Shown: positions 1 through 13,833 of the stretch, piece after piece
Numbering within the stretch: position 1 is the stretch's first letter
Layout of the letters: each line of letters begins with the position of its first letter
NCBI GenBank assembly: GCA_002794465.1
Contig: MTSL01000025.1
Location: forward strand, 16,765-30,597
Length of the DNA stretch: 13,833 nucleotides
Origin: Paramicrosporidium saccamoebae KSL3
Lineage: Eukaryota; Fungi; Cryptomycota
Reading direction: 5' to 3'
Notes under the pieces: model-generated
Told to the model about the DNA's origin: nothing
Database searches by the model: none
The model's input: the letters and a program-made list of their open reading frames with translations, nothing else
Program-made: the position numbers and the translations under genes

Positions 1-1257
1 GTTCCCGCTCCGTTCATCCATCATATCAATATTCAACATTAGATTTTCCTCTTTTGGAAGGTAATAATCCACTTTTAGATAGATATCATCCAATTTTGTC
101 GAGGCAGCTCCAGTCCAAATGGCCACAAGCTTCGATAGTTGTCTCGGAGTCAAACATTCCATGAACACCATGAAGACGGTTCGAGAACTCACTTTGCCAT
201 ACCATGAATCGACTTGCATGCCATTTTCTCATGTGATTTTACCGAATAAACCTGCGGCGGTCACTGGGGAAGGGATGAGTTTTGACTTTAGCATGGCGGA
301 GAAGCGCTCTTTGCGTGTCAGTGGCGTGTCAGGTATTTCGAGGAAATAACACAGCCCAGATCGAAAGGTTTTAACAAACTCTGTGAATTCTTTCAAGCAT
401 CTCTCATAAAACTGCTCGTAATATCCTTCCATGCTGTCATACTTGGATTCAGAATACACTGCAGCGATCTTTGCGTCCCAGTCGTCAAGGCTGAGTTCTC
501 CTTGTGGGATTTCATAGCTGTCGTAGTTGCTTTTGCTGATAAATCCATTGAGTGTCAATTTATCCAGCGGAGCCCAACTGAAATCCTCTCTGTTAGCATT
601 GAACCATGCCTCATTTGTTACTCTATCTGCAGCTTTCTCCTTCTCCTCAAAAGTCTTGGAAGGATCTTGCTTAATCTGCTTTACTTTCTCCTCTTGCTCA
701 GGCGTAAGCTTAAAGCTATCGCCCATCACACGCTGATAGAGATTGTTGGCTTTGAAAGTTTCCAACTCGCGCGCATACGTCTCTTTGAAATACGATGCAA
801 TCTCCTCACCATTGGCATTGAGAATGAGCTCATAAAACTTGGGATCGTGAGCAAAGGGGAGCCTCAATCCTTGCTGAAGTGTCTTTCCCACCAGGAATCC
901 TCCAACGAGCCCTCCATTGCCCTCGATTGGGAATTTGAATTTTTGGATGGAAGCATCGTAATCGCTGTAATTTGAAATCATGTTGTCGTTCATTGTGCCG
1001 TTAAGTTGTTCAATCCAGGCACAGATGGGTCCCTCTCCGAAAGCGCCAGCAAGGCCGACTGACGCCAACCAAGTAAACGAGGCACATGACTGATTGCCTA
1101 TTGAAGCACACTGCTCTATCAGAAAGGACCGACCGTCTGATGATGAAACCGTGGAAAGGTCGTGCTGAGGAGATATAGTCCTCGTAGATATAGCATACCC
1201 TCTCACAACAGTACCATTGAGATACTTTCTCGCAACAGGACCTTTTACACAGCATAT
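1..1257 (-). pseudogene. HECT-like E3 ubiquitin ligase domain, 5'-truncated paralog with an in-frame TGA at 229-231; frame runs off the left edge of the window
   Basis: The frame of ORF 229..1206 is open from 1257 (TAA at 1258-1260). It contains HECT-like segments GAFGEGPICAWIEQL, GFLVGKTLQQGLRLPFAHDPKFYELIL, EFVKTFRSGLCYFL and PSPVTAAGLFGKIT. Reading through the TGA gives 76 more open codons, ENGMQVDSWYGKVSSRTVFMVFMECLTPRQLSKLVAIWTGAAS..., resembling the HECT C-lobe motif WFWEVL..F..E.R.KFL.FVTG. The aldolase stop lies only 26 bp beyond the open frame, leaving no room for the N-terminal region seen in the paralog. Domain assignment is by eye. Confidence 0.7.
718..1068 (-). repeat. Left arm of a 351-bp inverted repeat (partner 13483-13833)
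   Basis: The reverse complement aligns without gaps to 13483-13833 with 26 mismatches in 351 nt (about 92.6%) by hand count. Confidence 0.95.
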
Positions 1258-1283: not shown

Positions 1284-2487
1284 TCAATAGCGGTAATCTT
1301 TGACATAGAGGCTTTCACTTGCAGTCGATACTCCGGCTTTGGCGCTATATTGACCCATTGATGCCTGGCTGTTGACCTTGGCACGCTCAACAAGCGCGTC
1401 CTGGGCCGACTTGACGTTGCCATCCTGCCCCTTCCACGTCTTAATAACCGAATTTTGCAGAGCGCGTGCATATGAAAAGGTAATGCGCCATGGTTTCTTT
1501 CCCGGAACGCGGTTAATCGAATCCAAATTCCTAGTCGCTTCTTCCTCGCTCTGTCCACCGCTGAGGAAACAAATTCCTGGAACTGCTGTGGGGACTGATC
1601 GCTGCAGAACGCGCATCGTTGCCAATCCAATCTCTTCAGAAGTGTACTTTTTCTGACACGACTGGCCGGGACAGACCATACTCGGCTTGAGAAGCGTTCC
1701 CTCCAAAAACACGTGATGGTCATGCAGACGCTATTGCAAAGTTAAGTCAGTAGTGCCATTGGTACTTTGTAAACTTCTGAAATGACGGCCTGGCCCACCG
1801 CAGTCGCAGTCTCCAGATCGTGGTCGCCATCCATCAGGATTTCAGGCTCCACAATGGGAACTAAACCGTTCGTCTGGCAGATTGACGCATAGCGAGCCAA
1901 GACAGTTGCATTGTCTGCAATGGCCAGTTGGGAGGGCTCATTGGGACCGATCTTATAGACACAGCGCCATTTGGCGAATCGACAGCCCTTTTGATAAAAG
2001 GTGGCACATCTCTCTGCCAAGCCATCCAAGCCCTGAGTGGTGGTTTCGCCATCCGTCCCCAACAACACCACGGTTCCCTAGCCAGTGTCAAAGTACAGCT
2101 AGCAATACCTTGTCGAGTTTGATTCCAGGAATGATGCCGGCATCAGAAAGGAGCTTGACGAAGGGAGTACCATCTGATGTCTTTTGGTCCACCGTCTCTT
2201 CAAAGAGGATGACTCCACCCAGATACTCCTTCAACTGTTCTAGAGAATGAGATGGCAATCACATCCATACTGGCTGCCGAAAAGAGCACCTCACGATACT
2301 TGCGACGATTCTCCTCGGTATTCTCCAGCCCAATGGTGGCCAGTCGTTTCCCAGCCGTGCCCAGCGACTCGTCGGCCGCCAAGATTCCCTTTCCATCCGC
2401 CACGATCGTTTCGGCGTTGCGGGCAAGCTCTTGGCGACGTTCCAAGGAGAGACCGAAGGAGTTGGAGGATGCAGATGTCATTGGCAT
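1284..2487 (-). CDS. FBA: Fructose-bisphosphate aldolase, class I; exons 2487-2271, 2239-2109, 2077-1766, 1730-1284 (1107 nt, 368 aa; alternative ATG at 2481)
   Basis: Class I motifs [48 protein letters not shown], Schiff-base lysine in [19 protein letters not shown] and TFSYARALQ, plus a C-terminal Tyr. Removing three short GT-AG introns joins the ORF fragments in frame. Confidence 0.96.
1731..1765 (-). other. Spliceosomal intron, 35 nt (aldolase intron 3)
   Basis: GTACCA...CTGACTTAAC...CAATAG on the minus strand; removal gives ISEVYK|[16 protein letters not shown]. Confidence 0.9.
2078..2108 (-). other. Spliceosomal intron, 31 nt (aldolase intron 2)
   Basis: GTATTG...GGCTAG on the minus strand; removal gives GIKLDK|[16 protein letters not shown]. 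Confidence 0.92.
2240..2270 (-). other. Spliceosomal intron, 31 nt (aldolase intron 1)
   Basis: GTATGG...CTCTAG on the minus strand, phase 1; removal gives [20 protein letters not shown]. Confidence 0.88.
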
Positions 2488-3488: not shown

Positions 3489-3583
3489 CACTCAGTCTAC
3501 CTCTACCTCTACCTCTACCTCTGCCTCTATCCATATCCATATCCATATCCATATCCATATCCATATCCCATCCCACTCAGTCT
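3489..3583. repeat. Compound hexanucleotide microsatellite, (CTCTAC-type)x5-6 then (CCATAT)x6, flanked by the direct repeat CACTCAGTCT
   Basis: CTCTAC at 3501, 3507 and 3513, CTCTGC at 3519, CTCTAT at 3525, then CCATAT six times over 3531-3566. CACTCAGTCT occurs at 3489-3498 and 3574-3583. Confidence 0.93.
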
Positions 3584-5678: not shown

Positions 5679-8388
5679 TTAAAGTTGAATGGATGATAGA
5701 ATCGTCTCGGCTACACTTACAAACTCTGGTCGACCCAACAATTCACCTGCCACCCCTTTTGGTGTCTCGGTAATCCATCCAACCACCATCGTTGCTTCTG
5801 TCATTCCCAGTTGCAGTGGCATTGTCGTCGCCAAATGTCCCAGGATGGCATACATGCGGATCAGTACCAAATATGGTTGTGATGTCACTGCATTAACTGG
5901 CTGAGTCAGCAAGGGTGATTGACTGCCTACCGGTGGATGGCGCCATAGACGTCGCAGACTGTCACACCATCGGATCAGTCGGCCCATTTCAACGCTCCAA
6001 TCTGAATAATAGCGCGCATCCAACCGACGCAGCGCATGCAGTAGCGTCAACAGTGACAGTTCCAAATACCCACCATCTGGCAGACCAAAGTGCACATTGT
6101 GTGGCACCGACTCGGTGTAGCTCTTATACAGTTCCCCATCTGATCTTAACAGTAAATCAATCAAATACGCCACTCCCAGAGCTGCCAACACAAAGCTCTC
6201 GGCAAATCCCCACATTGTCTCTACAACCTGCACCAACATTGTAGCCATGGATTTCTTTTGCTCGCACTCACCGTCAAACACTCCGCCGTTTCGCAAATTG
6301 CTCAATAGTCTACATAACGCATCCATTAACAGAAAACAGTGCGGTGGGATCGTCTTCCAGGTGGCATTTGCCACTTTGATGAATTGGATTATTGAATTTT
6401 TTACGGCCGCAGTGGAGACGGCACCAAGGTACAATTCGGGGTTCATGGCCACTGCATGGGCACGGTAGTCCTGCAGGCAATGCTTCACTTCGTCTACGGC
6501 CAAGGATAGCAGAGCCTCTACTCGCGTCCCCTCTGTCAGCGTGATTAAAGATGAAATCTGTACAAAAACCATCCAAAGTCCTGAATAACACTCCAAACTT
6601 AGGGAGCTCCAAACCTCCTCCTTTGTGAGAATGGGCACCAGAACTCTCCACACAAAATGTTCCTCTCCCGCCATAATTGCCGGGATTTCGGTCCGCACTG
6701 ACCAATTTCTAAGAACATTGACAATCGACTCGATCCGCGATGACTTTGGCTTTGGTCGACTCAGCAACCCCACTCCCTCCTCCTCGGCCTTTCTCCTCAA
6801 AAACACAAATGGCCTTTGGTTCCTTATCCGATCAGGCAACTCTGACAAATTGTCCATTTTTGTGTCTGTTCCTTCAGTATTCGAATCGGCCACTTTGACA
6901 TTTAATGAATTGAGCACTTCGGCACTGAGCAAATTGGCCAATGCCCGTATAAGGGACACGACTGAAGCTGCACTTAGGGCCGCATTTGAGTCAAAGGAAA
7001 GCCGTTCCAAGATTCCCAATCCCGCATTCTGCACTGCCGTCAAATCCGAATTCAACATTAAAAACAGTTCCTCATACGAAATCTTTCCCACCGTCGGAGT
7101 GCAACTCAACTTGCGCAACATTAATTGCCCACCACGAAGCATATCCTTTACGTCGTCTTCTCGTGTTCGTGTTGTGGGGGAGGACATTGGCCGTTTGGCA
7201 GGGATGATGGGAGAACCTTCTGCAATTGGTTCAGAATTCCTTAACAGATCATCCGTACTAATCGTTCCCATATTCATTGTCTCTGCAACTCGTGGCTCTG
7301 AATGTCGCAAATCTGGGTGTCGTGAATCGGAGTGTCGCAGGTCGGGATGTCGGGGGTCGGGATTTCGTGTATCGGGGTGTCGTGTATCGGGGTGTCGTTG
7401 ATCGGGGTGTCTTGATTCTGAATATGGTGATTTTGAATATTGTGATTCTGAAGATTGTGATTTTACAATTTGTGGCTCTGTAGATCTTGATTCGGCTGTC
7501 CGTGTCTCTGGAGATTGTGTTTCTGAACCTCTGGATTCTGCGGATTGTGCTTCTAGACTTCTGAATTCTGAACCTCTGGATCCTGGATCTCTGGATTCTA
7601 AACCTCTGAATTCTGAACCTCTGGGATCTAGACCCTGTGATTCCAAGCCTCTAGCGTCCAAACCCCGCGATTCTAAACCTTTGGATTCTTCTTCAATTGC
7701 TCCAGGAGTCAGATTCTGAACCTGTGCAATCAGCGCGTGTGGCCCTAAATGATTAGCGCCCGAGAAGAGGGATACAAGACACTTTGTCCAATGGAATCCG
7801 ATGGAAAAAGACCTGTTCGTAGGCGAAAAAGAGAGTAAAATAAAACGACCGCAATTGCACCAACAGTTCCGGCGTAATGGGTGAGAATTGTAGTGACATT
7901 GCCACGGCGTTCCAGCAATTTCCATCCGTTACCCGGTGAAAACCGCCAAATGCCGTCACTGTGCGGTACAACGAGTGCATTTGGATGGGTTGGTCCTTGA
8001 AGCGCGGCACCTTTCGTAGCGGCAAGTTAATGAGTCCCATGAAACGGGACAGACTGTCCACAAACTGCGTCTCATTCATCTCCACTGCGTATGGGGGCAC
8101 CGTGTGAAAGTACTTGAATATGGGCAGTCCTGTCACTTTGGGCGGTGTGGCCCGCGGTGTTGTCGGCCTCATCACCGGACTGCCCATGGGCGAAGTTGGG
8201 CGGTAATGCGGCATCGGCGCTCGGCTCATTGTCGGCATGGGCGGTCCACGCGTCCGCCACTGACTCAGCATTTGCAGCTGCGCCTGTTGCATCATCTCTG
8301 CCGTCATAGGCGGTCGTGGAGGTCGTCCTGGCGTGGTAAAGTGCAATTCGTTTGTCGGCGTCTTGGGGGGTCCTTCACCGCCTTCCAT
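5679..8388 (-). CDS. ARID-domain protein, probable SWI1/ARID1-like SWI/SNF (or RSC) subunit; exons 8388-7776 and 7744-5679 (892 aa)
   Basis: Exon 1 has a Pro/Met-rich N-terminus and an ARID helix set (VPRFKDQPIQMHSLYRTVTAFGGFHRV...WNAVAMSLQF...QLRSFYFTLFFAYEQ). A 31-nt intron joins it to ORF 5679..7925, whose segments LFLMLNSDLTAVQNAGLGILERLSFD and IVNVLRNWSV resemble the ARM-like C-terminal region of Swi1/ARID1. The subfamily call is tentative. Confidence 0.75.
7284..7688 (-). repeat. Coding minisatellite, about 27 degenerate 15-bp units encoding pentapeptides (ESRGL-type grading to DxRHP-type)
   Basis: Translation reads ESKGL ESRGL DARGL ESQGL DPRGS EFRGL ... ESRHP DQRHP DTRHP DTRNP DPRHP DLRHS DSRHP DLRHS EPRVA. 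Confidence 0.9.
7745..7775 (-). other. Spliceosomal intron, 31 nt (ARID gene)
   Basis: GTATCC...GCTAATCATTTAG with a branch-point-like GCTAAT, phase 1. It is the only nearby donor that restores frame (IPLDKVSW|PHALIAQ). Confidence 0.85.
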
Positions 8389-11199: not shown

Positions 11200-11484
11200 T
11201 CCTTTTACATTCTTGGGAAACAGTTTTTCTTGATAAGATACTATTTTCAGCAGGCCGCCAATAATAAGGTCGTTCTTGTTTGACATCAGTCGGCCAATCA
11301 GATGACTAATGTTATATAGTATTGATACAGGATGTGGCGCACGATGGACAGGAGTAACCGAGGTTGGTTGTTGTGATTGATGCTGCTTACATACTTGGTG
11401 CAGGCACGAACCCATCAGCCGGGCGTGCCCTCTGATAGGCTGTTGTGGAAATATCCGTTGGTCACACAGGGCTAGCTTGTCAGG

Positions 11485-13833
11485 ATGGTGTCTATGCTGT
11501 CTCTCTATTTTCTCTTGCTGGCGGCACGGTTTTGCGCTGCGAGTAACGTCAACTGTGAATCTCTGGTCGCTACTATCGATACAAGTGGCCATTCCATCGT
11601 GAAGCAGGTTATCGACAACTGGGAACAGTGCCGCTTCGCGTTCTTGAAAAATGTGTCGCCCATGAGAGTAGCGATGCTTATTGAAAATTTGTGCGAATTA
11701 GCATGGGCCCAGGTAGAGCCAATTTACCAAGATTTGGTCAGCACAGAGGAGGTTGCCCGTAACATTACTGTCGACGAGCTGGAAGGGTTGGTTTATGAGG
11801 GTGTTATTATACCACCAGAGTTTTTTGCAGCGGTGCCAAACGTTAAGGACTTTCGTGGGACATACTATCAAGATTATAAAGCACCTGTGGATCTTTTGGA
11901 ATACTATGACGGTCCAGTGCCTTATATTTGGTACTGGATGGTGCCACAGCAGTTCAGGCTGCTTGGAAGCAAACTTGAGAAAGAGTTTCTGTGCCAAGAT
12001 GTAGATAAAAATGCAATCAGTGGCGAAAATTTTAAATCCATCGGGATGAGGTGCCTCCGCGGTCTTCTCAGATCGAAATTGTCGACTCCAGCACCAGCTT
12101 TAGGTCGTGTGTGGCTGGAAATCAGCAAAGAAACTGTCGCAAAATGGATTGAGCATCTTGACGAGGATTTCAAACTTGTTTCTGTTTACGATTACGAGTA
12201 TTTGCCAACCGACGTATGGCAAAAGGTGTTAGAGTTGTTCACGCTTGTGGAACATATCAAAGAGAACGCTGAATTTCATTATACTCACCCGATTTTCAAA
12301 GTATCGTTACAGAAGATTGGGCATGTCCAATTCGCCAAGATTATTAGAAGACTTCCTACTGTGGCCAGAGAGTTTATGTTGAAACATCGCACCAAGCTAC
12401 CTGGTGACATTCTTGCGAGCTGCGGGAAGGCGGAGATGGAGCTACTCGCGCTCTCGAATGCTGACATTGTGAAGAAATATGAAGAAAGGCCAGAAATTAT
12501 TGAGAGTATGAGCAGCTCTCTGGAAGACGCAAAGCATTTTTGCTACGACATGAAACTTGAAACATATCGTGGAATGGATTGGCTGCGTAGATACGGTAGT
12601 GATCAATGTCGTGAGCTCATAGCTGCTTCTAACAATGTGGATGTTAGCGAATTTCCAGAACTGACTAATGATGTGGGAGTCTGGAGACCGTACATTGAAA
12701 TAGTGAAGGACCCACGGAGCACCTTTTCATACAACGCATATATCTTGTTAAAGACACGAAAAGAGTTCTGTGAGCTATTGGCTGAAGAGATCAACGGCAA
12801 AGAGTTGGCGTATTTAGAAGATGACTATCTTGGAGCCATTGGAAGTAAGTGCGCTTTGGCGTTGAGGCGTCATTTAACAGCTGGTATCGCTCCAAAACTT
12901 GCGGCTAATGCTTTCCGGTTGTTTACAGTGGATGAATTCAATTTTAAGCTAAGCGATCTGTCTCCTCAACAAATACCACATCTGTCGGAAGGTGTCCCGA
13001 CAGAGTACAGTGTATTTTTCAAGATTGATATAGAAGAGTTTTTGACGTATGAAGATGAGATTATCGGGAGTGTCACTGAATCCCAAGTGGAGGCGATGCG
13101 AGCGACCGAGGAGCAACGCGAATGGATTGCGTTCCAGCGCAACGCCGCTCAGTTGAGAGATGAGACACAATCTTCCATTTCTTCAGAGCCATTTGCGACG
13201 TGCCTCGACATGAAAGACAAGAAATGTTTCAATGTACTTTTCAAAAGTATTGATAAGATGTCACAACGTCGCAAAGACGATTTGGTGTGTTCTCTCAAAA
13301 AAAGAGAGGAATTTCGAGAAATGTTATGGGAACTTCTAAATGGAGATTACTTGTTGAAACTAATTACAAGGATCTTTCATTTTTCACATGATTGGTTTAC
13401 GATACGGCACGATGGACGAAAATATGACTTGGAAGATTCCCTCGACAAAATCCGAAACGTTACCAAATCGCTAGCTTCACCACTTGCGTCGATCAGCCTT
13501 GCTGGCGCTTCAGGAGAGGGGCCCACCTGTGCCTGGATCGAACAACTTAACGGCACAATGAACGACAACATGATTTCAAATTACAGCGATTGTGATGCTT
13601 CCATCCAAAAATTCAAATTCCCAATCAAGGGCAACGGAGGGCTCGTTGCAGGATTCCTGGTGGGAAAAGCGCTTCAGCGAGGATTGAGGCTCCCTTTTGC
13701 TCTCGATCCCAAGTTCTATGAGCTCATTCTCAATGCCGATGACGAGGAGATTGCATCGTATTTCAAAGAGACGTATGCGCACGAGTTGGAAACTTTCAAA
13801 GCCAACAATCTCTATCAGCGTGTGATGGGCGAT
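11485..13833 (+). CDS. Putative secreted protein with a C-terminal HECT-like E3 ligase domain (at least 783 aa, 3'-partial)
   Basis: Manual translation in frame 1 shows TAG at 11473-11475, ATG at 11485, then 783 codons with no stop to the window end. The N-terminus MVSMLSLYFLLLAARFCAA resembles a signal peptide. From about 13390: WFTIRHDGRKYDLEDSLDKI (cf. HECT 'I.VRR..ILEDS'), GASGEGPTCAWIEQL (cf. 'G.D.GG..REWF') and GFLVGKALQRGLRLPFALDPKFYELIL (cf. 'GRL.GKAL.DG..L...F...FYK.LL'). Confidence 0.82.
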   Translation, partial: MVSMLSLYFLLLAARFCAASNVNCESLVATIDTSGHSIVKQVIDNWEQCRFAFLKNVSPMRVAMLIENLCELAWAQVEPIYQDLVSTEEVARNITVDELEGLVYEGVIIPPEFFAAVPNVKDFRGTYYQDYKAPVDLLEYYDGPVPYIWYWMVPQQFRLLGSKLEKEFLCQDVDKNAISGENFKSIGMRCLRGLLRSKLSTPAPALGRVWLEISKETVAKWIEHLDEDFKLVSVYDYEYLPTDVWQKVLELFTLVEHIKENAEFHYTHPIFKVSLQKIGHVQFAKIIRRLPTVAREFMLKHRTKLPGDILASCGKAEMELLALSNADIVKKYEERPEIIESMSSSLEDAKHFCYDMKLETYRGMDWLRRYGSDQCRELIAASNNVDVSEFPELTNDVGVWRPYIEIVKDPRSTFSYNAYILLKTRKEFCELLAEEINGKELAYLEDDYLGAIGSKCALALRRHLTAGIAPKLAANAFRLFTVDEFNFKLSDLSPQQIPHLSEGVPTEYSVFFKIDIEEFLTYEDEIIGSVTESQVEAMRATEEQREWIAFQRNAAQLRDETQSSISSEPFATCLDMKDKKCFNVLFKSIDKMSQRRKDDLVCSLKKREEFREMLWELLNGDYLLKLITRIFHFSHDWFTIRHDGRKYDLEDSLDKIRNVTKSLASPLASISLAGASGEGPTCAWIEQLNGTMNDNMISNYSDCDASIQKFKFPIKGNGGLVAGFLVGKALQRGLRLPFALDPKFYELILNADDEEIASYFKETYAHELETFKANNLYQRVMGD
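13483..13833 (+). repeat. Right arm of the inverted repeat (partner 718-1068); probably continues beyond the window
   Basis: Ungapped alignment to the reverse complement of 718-1068. Identity is near perfect at the window edge (1 mismatch in the last 63 nt). Confidence 0.95.

Follow-up and report, generated by a model that had tools for sequence, protein, structure and literature searches.

The intranuclear parasite Paramicrosporidium saccamoebae KSL3 carries, at the right end of the 13,833-nucleotide stretch analysed here (the window; positions 16,765 to 30,597 of the 55,301 bp contig MTSL01000025.1, assembly GCA_002794465.1; record coordinate = window + 16764), the 5′ part of a gene whose product combines a signal-peptide-like N-terminus, a cysteine-paired N-terminal module and a strongly diverged HECT-like domain. 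We hold with high confidence that this C-terminal region is a genuine HECT domain, though a very divergent one, and the N-terminal sequence makes routing of the protein into the secretory pathway probable. Our favoured reading, to which we assign a probability of roughly 0.5, is that of a secreted, host-directed HECT-like ligase; the claim that the protein is a host-directed ubiquitin ligase we hold a little more tentatively. On its sequence, the protein is a plausible tool for tagging host proteins, probably a secreted one. PMC5701793 describes the species as a member of the Rozellomycota that lives as a parasite inside amoeba nuclei and is related to Microsporidia.

The frame that starts at 11485 on the forward strand is open through all 783 codons up to 13833, where the window ends, in agreement with the open reading frame of at least 783 codons proposed in the initial annotation. 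Because about 3 stops are expected per 64 codons, an open run of this length by chance is negligible. An in-frame stop (11473-11475) lies 9 nucleotides 5′ of the first ATG. The source record also calls a gene here, an intron-less "hypothetical protein" of 1121 residues without a Pfam hit on the record, which runs from window position 11494 to the window-equivalent of 14859 and of which 11485-13833 makes up the 5′ 70%. Its absence from the list of open reading frames, noted initially, is real, but it arose only because frames running off the window were not listed. Starting at 11485 (MVSMLSLYF...) instead of at the database position gives a gene length of 1121-1124 codons depending on the choice, and the earlier start fits the N-termini of paralogs (MLSMLPLYL..., MLTMLSLYL...) at least as well. 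Directly after the window end the gene is interrupted by a 213-N assembly gap at ~30598-30810 of the record, whose length is only estimated; 270 further codons are open beyond it, the full-length paralogs span the gap region with ~50-57 residues, and the stretches on either side are collinear with them.

A divergent HECT domain

With a full-length family profile, HMMER was run exhaustively over 1.84 billion representatives and recovered 86 relatives, 63 of them at E ≤ 1e-10. In this enlarged family the hallmarks of HECT domains are clearer, both at the start of the N-lobe (...ID.GGP.R.W.dqML...) and in the C-lobe (F..F...L...QLa.L...WTGSs), and the relatives carry C-terminal cysteine loops such as LSHTCSFSMDVPL, SQSCYNILNVPV and ASSCFRFIQLPLQ. 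A 25-sequence alignment of the C-terminal region (profile A6) was then searched against 177,635 PDB sequences. At E ≤ 1, 22 of the 23 matches were HECT E3 ubiquitin ligases, aligned in three collinear blocks, with AREL1 (6.3e-6) and TOM1 (2e-4) as the best matches, followed by SMURF1/2, HUWE1, E6AP and HECW2. When the same alignment was used in a word-indexed search, just two proteins came back, both already known. One paralog bears the automatic UniRef label 'HECT domain-containing'.

We modelled residues 610-1149 of the paralog PSACC_03196 (P0002), which shares ~60% identity with the part of the HECT domain that lies in the window, in AlphaFold2 with profile A6 and obtained a mean predicted local distance difference test score (pLDDT) of 79.9 and a predicted template-modelling score (pTM) of 0.78. 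The top 50 PDB matches of this model in Foldseek were all eukaryotic HECT E3s (probability 0.98-1.00, E down to 1.5e-5) and included UBR5, HECTD3, HUWE1, SMURF1/2, NEDD4, HACE1, TRIP12, AREL1, Tom1, WWP1/2, E6AP and Rsp5. The model points to a bilobal HECT fold in the family, with a large N-lobe and a small C-lobe. A structural comparison with the E6AP and NEDD4 domains had been proposed at the outset; both appear among these matches, although for the paralog and not for the target itself. The domain is thus of the eukaryotic HECT type and not a mimic like the bacterial SopA and NleL: no such bacterial domain occurs among the top 50 PDB matches of the P0002 model, in a search that included no such effector as control.

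What remains of the target's N-lobe, as well as its C-lobe and its candidate catalytic cysteine, is found outside the window, beyond the gap, where the sequence reads VFKVFIECLTPRQLSKLVAVWTGASS and ends in ...YPSKDGAACSKVARIPIQHARLMVEALIYLLNDEPSSLAG before the stop. Extending the contig, as had been recommended, revealed a cysteine 31 residues from the C-terminus, within GAACSKVARIP and in a loop of the pattern (S/T/A)-C...(L/I)P. In the A6 alignment this cysteine occupies one of five columns conserved at ≥90% and aligns on the catalytic cysteine of AREL1 (ahTCFN.L.LP). The target thus keeps a candidate catalytic cysteine at the HECT position, which would be predicted to form a ubiquitin thioester. 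At their C-terminal tails the relatives follow LLN.P...(M/Y/F/I).D, in which a hydrophobic residue is conserved at a variable distance from the end. Because the A6 matches in the PDB, the AlphaFold and Foldseek results and the candidate catalytic cysteine concur, we consider the domain homologous to HECT, and the HECT-like motifs first noticed in the bare sequence are borne out as part of it.

In Pfam, where the gathering threshold for HECT (PF00632) is 23.9 bits, the proposed search gave hits below that score only. A 146-residue piece of the window scored below threshold (13.5 bits, E = 0.056), but the match, at residues 721-772 (13645-13800; GFLVGKALQRGLRLPFALDPKFYELIL...) and profile positions 42-95, always recurs at the same block: the C-terminus of P0002 (15.2 bits) and the paralog P0001 (13 bits) hit the same block and the same profile positions. 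Among the relatives, 5 of 36 matched at E ≤ 0.01 (best 9.5e-5), with scores of 21.5 and 19.1 bits seen.

A signal-peptide-like N-terminus across the family

Signal peptides were called by explicit heuristic criteria covering the hydrophobic core, the residues at -3/-1 and transmembrane-like windows. By these criteria the signal-peptide-like start described in the initial annotation stands: the target N-terminus, M(VSM)LSLYFLLLAARFCAAS followed by NV, has an uncharged hydrophobic core of 10-12 residues (LSLYFLLLAA) and small residues at -3 and -1 (AAS before NV), and a scan for further transmembrane-like segments in the target found none beyond this core. Paralogs have N-termini of the same design, for example MLSMLPLYLLLQILQYCTAS followed by SV, and other relatives begin with textbook signal peptides such as MKLNAAIVVKLALTFLVASSEGAGA and MRVAPVLFIVIIGGAFFCSAANL. 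Overall, a signal-peptide-like start was present in 19 of 27 full-length HECT-like members and in 26 of 30 members with the N-terminal module only, compared to 7.5% of internal-methionine controls drawn from the same proteins, and several of the members that failed were near-misses or had mis-called starts. A signal-peptide-like N-terminus is thus a family-wide trait, and a signal peptide in the target is supported indirectly. As for the proposed count of paralogs in the genome, several copies are present there.

A widespread module precedes the HECT domain

Residues 82-541 of the target matched a profile built from relatives only with 303 bits, and the ~640 N-terminal residues that had been left unassigned therefore hold a real, widespread module of ~460 residues (hereafter the N-module). 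In Pfam, these ~640 residues had no match at E ≤ 1. The N-module is common to dozens of signal-peptide proteins. Three pairs of cysteines recur in it across the relatives: C170 and C190 (35/38 and 36/39), C353 and C375 (41/41 and 39/40), and C429 and C456 (22/31 and 26/32). Their conservation would fit disulfide bonds made in the secretory pathway.

We did not adopt a BspA-type leucine-rich repeat (LRR) assignment for the N-terminal 640 residues. A match to LRR_5 was sub-threshold and confined to one relative (24 vs 27.7 bits), matches to LRR/solenoid and designed helical-repeat proteins came from a part of the relatives' profile whose overlap with the target N-module is limited to the tail of the latter, and a self-BLAST of the target N-terminus detected no internal repeat. 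Separately, positions ~640-710 of a profile of N-module-only relatives (A7) match PDB entry 9zem, the de novo designed helical-repeat protein 'HeliScrew4', at E = 3.6e-20; the match runs through repeated L-t/s-p-e-Q-i-a-a-L units, where LRR proteins also match at ~1e-7. This part of the profile only touches the end of the target N-module, around ...LSDLSPQQIPHLS...VTESQVEAM.

Judged by the proteins in which it occurs, the N-module behaves like a unit shuffled among different enzyme partners. It is found in P. saccamoebae proteins annotated "Alpha/beta hydrolase" (P0066, PJF18917.1) and "Proteinase (Secreted protein)" (P0028, PJF18592.1; P0029, PJF19829.1), twice in one protein of 1964 residues (P0024, PSACC_03163), and together with PGAP1-like and lipase domains in other relatives. 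HECT-like domains of the family also occur behind other N-termini, without the N-module, in the adjacent genes PSACC_02458 and PSACC_02459 (P0036 and P0048, on one 11.8-kb contig), both of whose proteins have hydrophobic N-terminal segments. In a subfamily of ~970-995 residues (P0020, P0023, P0027, P0030, P0037, P0040 and P0047), three tandem copies of a ~110-residue piece of the N-module, corresponding to profile positions ~80-200, stand ahead of the HECT-like domain. The named relatives are all from P. saccamoebae, and the remainder come from metagenome or Sequence Read Archive assemblies.

Proposed mode of action and competing explanations

In the model that we favour, the protein would have three parts: a cleavable signal peptide; a disulfide-stabilised N-module of ~460 residues with a linker; and a divergent eukaryotic-type HECT domain of ~480 residues, the C-lobe of which carries a family-specific helical insertion and the conserved cysteine 31 residues from the C-terminus. 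The signal peptide would direct co-translational entry into the endoplasmic reticulum (ER) and be cleaved off, disulfides would form in the N-module, and the protein would leave the parasite for the nucleus or cytoplasm of the host. Since the parasite's home is the host nucleus, a secreted protein would find host ubiquitin, E1 and E2 close by. The HECT domain could then accept ubiquitin from a host E2, using the host E1 and E2 enzymes, onto its cysteine and pass it to host proteins held by the N-module, which would thereby choose the substrates.

Several observations weigh against this model. The whole 783-residue window fragment has no HECT match in Pfam at E ≤ 1, no family member tested reaches the gathering score, and a 5-sequence family profile found no HECT in the PDB, only a spurious thiol peroxidase at E = 1.4; a phmmer search of the window fragment against the PDB likewise gave nothing relevant. 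The structural similarity is weaker than a clean superposition, with template-modelling (TM) scores up to 0.55 (normalised to target) and a high global root-mean-square deviation, a combination that two hinged lobes plus family-specific insertions would explain. Furthermore, the modelled protein is a paralog 39-42% identical to the target, whose own N-lobe contains the assembly gap, and an earlier AlphaFold2 model with 6 sequences reached a pLDDT of 37 and was discarded and excluded from the fold search. At the motif level, GG..RE is degenerate in the target (GEGPTCAW), the residues around the cysteine are A-C-S as opposed to the usual T-C-F, the canonical -4 Phe is not evident in the tail (...NDEPSSLAG), and the cysteine is absent from the C-terminal loop of P0003, P0025 (PSACC_01062), P0037, P0067, P0073 and P0085, which may be pseudo-ligases. 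As for export, the n-region of the target has no basic residue, its signal-peptide call comes from the heuristic, and a free catalytic cysteine would have to survive the oxidising secretory pathway.

The extreme divergence from canonical HECTs, the lack of a Pfam match at threshold, the degenerate GG..RE motif, the inconspicuous -4 Phe and the members that have lost the cysteine would suit a secreted or surface protein whose HECT-like domain does not ubiquitinate host proteins. It could instead be a pseudo-enzyme, a binding module or an acyl/thioester enzyme put to a new use, and would work outside the cell or within the spore, the cell wall or the secretory system of the parasite itself. That the N-module is also fused to hydrolase and protease domains of the kind seen in typical extracellular enzymes points the same way, as does the fact that the secretory lumen and the outside contain no ubiquitin, E1, E2 or adenosine triphosphate. 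We nevertheless judge this explanation unlikely. The cysteine is conserved at ≥90% over 25 diverse members and the TGS and Cys-loop blocks of the C-lobe are the best conserved, which argues that HECT-type chemistry has been retained, and secreted proteins of a parasite that sits inside the host nucleus can meet the host ubiquitin machinery.

A different objection concerns the N-terminus, which might not be a cleaved export signal at all, leaving the protein inside the parasite as an ordinary lineage-specific HECT E3 that acts on parasite proteins, whether it is a ligase anchored in a membrane and exposed to the parasite cytosol or its true start is a different one. The missing basic n-region, together with an Arg just past the core, could favour an N-out/C-in anchor, introns in the genome make an unannotated upstream exon conceivable, and the target sits among housekeeping genes and not in an obvious effector island. 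Yet a hydrophobic core of ~10-12 residues is too short for a typical transmembrane anchor, the stop 9 nucleotides upstream of the first ATG is in frame, relatives have textbook signal peptides, signal-peptide-like starts reach 70-87% in the family vs 7.5% in controls, and the three conserved cysteine pairs of the N-module fit disulfides formed in the ER; we find a purely parasite-internal role improbable. Far more improbable still is a non-functional locus or an assembly artefact, in which a gene model would have been drawn through the N gap of a decaying repeat-family member. The 213-N gap of merely estimated length does interrupt the coding sequence, a partner copy 12.4 kb away (described below) is truncated and stop-bearing, and at each end of the window an assembly gap falls inside the repeat. 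On the other side, the 783 and 270 open codons that flank the gap are collinear with full-length paralogs, all family-conserved blocks and the cysteine are kept, and the ratio of nonsynonymous to synonymous substitution rates (Ka/Ks) against the fragment is ~0.3.

Relation to known systems

Hijacking of host ubiquitination by pathogens is best known from bacterial effectors and viral adaptors. Among the former are the type III substrates SopA and NleL, which have a beta-helix at the N-terminus and whose bilobal catalytic domain is convergent or remote. To our knowledge, the effector biochemistry of intracellular parasites of the microsporidian lineage is almost unknown. A secreted HECT-like ligase of Paramicrosporidium would share with SopA and NleL the concept of a pathogen-delivered, cysteine-dependent E3 that uses host E2~Ub, but it would be delivered by a eukaryotic secretory pathway.

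The closest structural kin are the canonical eukaryotic HECT E3s (PF00632; AREL1, Tom1/HUWE1, SMURF1/2, NEDD4/Rsp5, E6AP, UBR5 and HECTD3). With them the family shares the bilobal fold, as seen in the paralog model, the collinear blocks D.GGP.R.W, G.A.Q...lPF..d..FY.lL (a hydrophobic helix region) and F..F...L...QL..L...TGSs, the Cys loop, LP and terminal helix, and the position of the cysteine ~31 residues from the C-terminus. In contrast to them, it is only ~10-14% identical to solved HECTs and lies below the Pfam threshold, it has long N-lobe insertions and an extra conserved C-lobe helix (G.EY..F...........L) before the Cys loop, it has no clear -4 Phe, and a signal peptide with a Cys-paired N-module stands in place of the usual cytosolic targeting domains such as WW, C2 and ankyrin.

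Pythium ultimum provides a parallel from another eukaryotic pathogen with an expanded HECT set, in which 16 of 56 HECTs have SignalP-predicted signal peptides and secreted E3s have been discussed as effectors on bioinformatic grounds only (PMC2926784). Its HECTs, however, are canonical (PANTHER PTHR11254, UPL1/UPL2-like) and come from an unrelated lineage, whereas the Paramicrosporidium family diverges much further, possesses an N-module of its own and stems from Rozellomycota and environmental eukaryotes. Secreted RING effectors are known from insects; the secretory RING proteins of grape phylloxera (PMC6892190) likewise combine a signal peptide with an E3 domain in an expanded, lineage-specific family. 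Secreted RING and F-box effectors belong to another catalytic class than the target, being scaffolds that work without a thioester intermediate. In the paper on the P. saccamoebae genome there is no mention of HECT, ubiquitin, secretion or effectors, and our literature search found no paper linking Paramicrosporidium with HECT in the sense of a secreted ligase. The concept of a HECT protein with a signal peptide thus has a precedent in Pythium; what is new is a strongly divergent family in a lineage whose effector biochemistry is nearly unexplored.

The combination of secretion signals, a lineage-specific targeting module and a recognisable mechanism with a single testable cysteine offers a handle on possible host manipulation from within the nucleus. 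With this family the sequence space known for the HECT fold widens to domains that standard Pfam annotation misses, and the analysis flags problems in the reference-genome annotation, namely one gene model that spans a gap and another that fuses aldolase with a HECT-like fragment. We find the reuse of the N-module with different enzyme domains the most intriguing lead. At its most speculative, and in our estimate unlikely, it could reflect a modular effector system in Paramicrosporidium and its uncultured relatives, in which signal peptide and disulfide-bonded N-module would carry interchangeable enzymes into the host nucleus. The N-module may then be a delivery, anchoring or host-targeting domain, and its cargo a HECT ligase, an alpha/beta-hydrolase/lipase or a protease. 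If so, the HECT members would be the first HECT ligases secreted by a eukaryote that are shown to rewire host ubiquitin from inside the nucleus.

An inverted partial duplicate and the surrounding locus

The initial annotation counted at least two copies within 13 kb. A second copy is indeed present at the left end of the window, and several exist in the genome, but the left one is a stop-interrupted 3′ fragment. Over 718-1221 on the reverse strand it is 70% identical to the target at the amino-acid level, and over 348 nucleotides (718-1065 vs 13486-13833) 93% identical at the nucleotide level; similarity resumes after the gap at 80% nucleotide identity up to ~20 nucleotides past the stop codon, and weaker protein similarity reaches back to ~1221. 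We rejected this copy as a second intact gene since it covers only the last ~500 codons, without a start codon, signal peptide or N-module, abuts the stop of an aldolase gene, and contains an in-frame TGA (229-231) where the intact gene has Trp. It begins directly after the aldolase stop (near 1290) and runs off the left end of the window into a 10-N gap. The aldolase itself is well identified, as PF00274 was matched through the last profile position. Because its stop precedes the fragment, the 811-residue database model, which extends from 2487 past the left end of the window, is chimeric and joins aldolase to the fragment.

Between the left fragment and the intact gene, Ka/Ks was 0.33 and 0.29 in two segments, with Ks values of 0.155 vs 0.517. 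These sequence comparisons suggest that the fragment was under constraint during most of its existence and that its decay is recent, or is masked by gene conversion of the proximal segment, or both. The contrast in Ks, together with that in identity (93% vs 80%), is a hint of such conversion and of a possible inversion of the intervening block. The two repeat arms are inverted around 12.4 kb of housekeeping genes, and both coincide with assembly gaps at the window ends. The neighbours of the target comprise the aldolase, prefoldin, TCP-1, an ARID-like protein and an actin-related protein, with Mre11 downstream; the aldolase and actin-related genes contain introns. Feature coordinates are collected in Table 1.

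Table 1. Positions of the target gene, its parts and the related features within the window
Feature	Position	Strand	Basis and remarks
Target gene, 5′ 783 codons of 1121-1124	11485..13833	+	Open frame; database model from 11494; continues past 213-N gap to stop at 14859-equivalent
Signal-peptide-like N-terminus (MVSMLSLYFLLLAARFCAAS, followed by NV)	11485..11544	+	Heuristic: hydrophobic core, small -3/-1 residues
N-module, ~460 residues (82-541)	11728..13107	+	303 bits vs relatives-only profile; conserved Cys pairs
Start of divergent HECT domain (N-lobe)	13396..13833	+	GEGP..AW motif at 13510-13536; GFLVGKALQRGLRLPFALDPKFYELIL at 13651-13731
Inverted partial duplicate, HECT-like C-terminal ~500 codons	1..1221	-	Protein and nucleotide similarity; in-frame TGA at 229-231
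Inverted repeat, left arm	718..1065		93% nucleotide identity to 13486-13833
Inverted repeat, right arm	13486..13833		Continues past gap at 80% nucleotide identity to ~20 nucleotides beyond stop codon
Class-I fructose-bisphosphate aldolase gene, with introns	1290..2487	-	PF00274; wrongly merged with HECT-like fragment in 811-residue model

Two further repeat features were observed in the intervening block. In the divergent intergenic region that separates prefoldin from TCP-1, two adjacent hexamer microsatellites, perfect or near-perfect, lie at 3496-3568: (TCTACC)x5.7 and (TATCCA)x6.8. The ARID-like gene (5679-8388, reverse strand) harbours degenerate tandem repeats of 15/30/45 nucleotides at 7297-7689; translated, they give runs such as SRGLESRGLDARGLESQGL... 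and RHPDQRHPDTRHPDTRNPDPRHPDLRH within the N-terminal portion of the protein.

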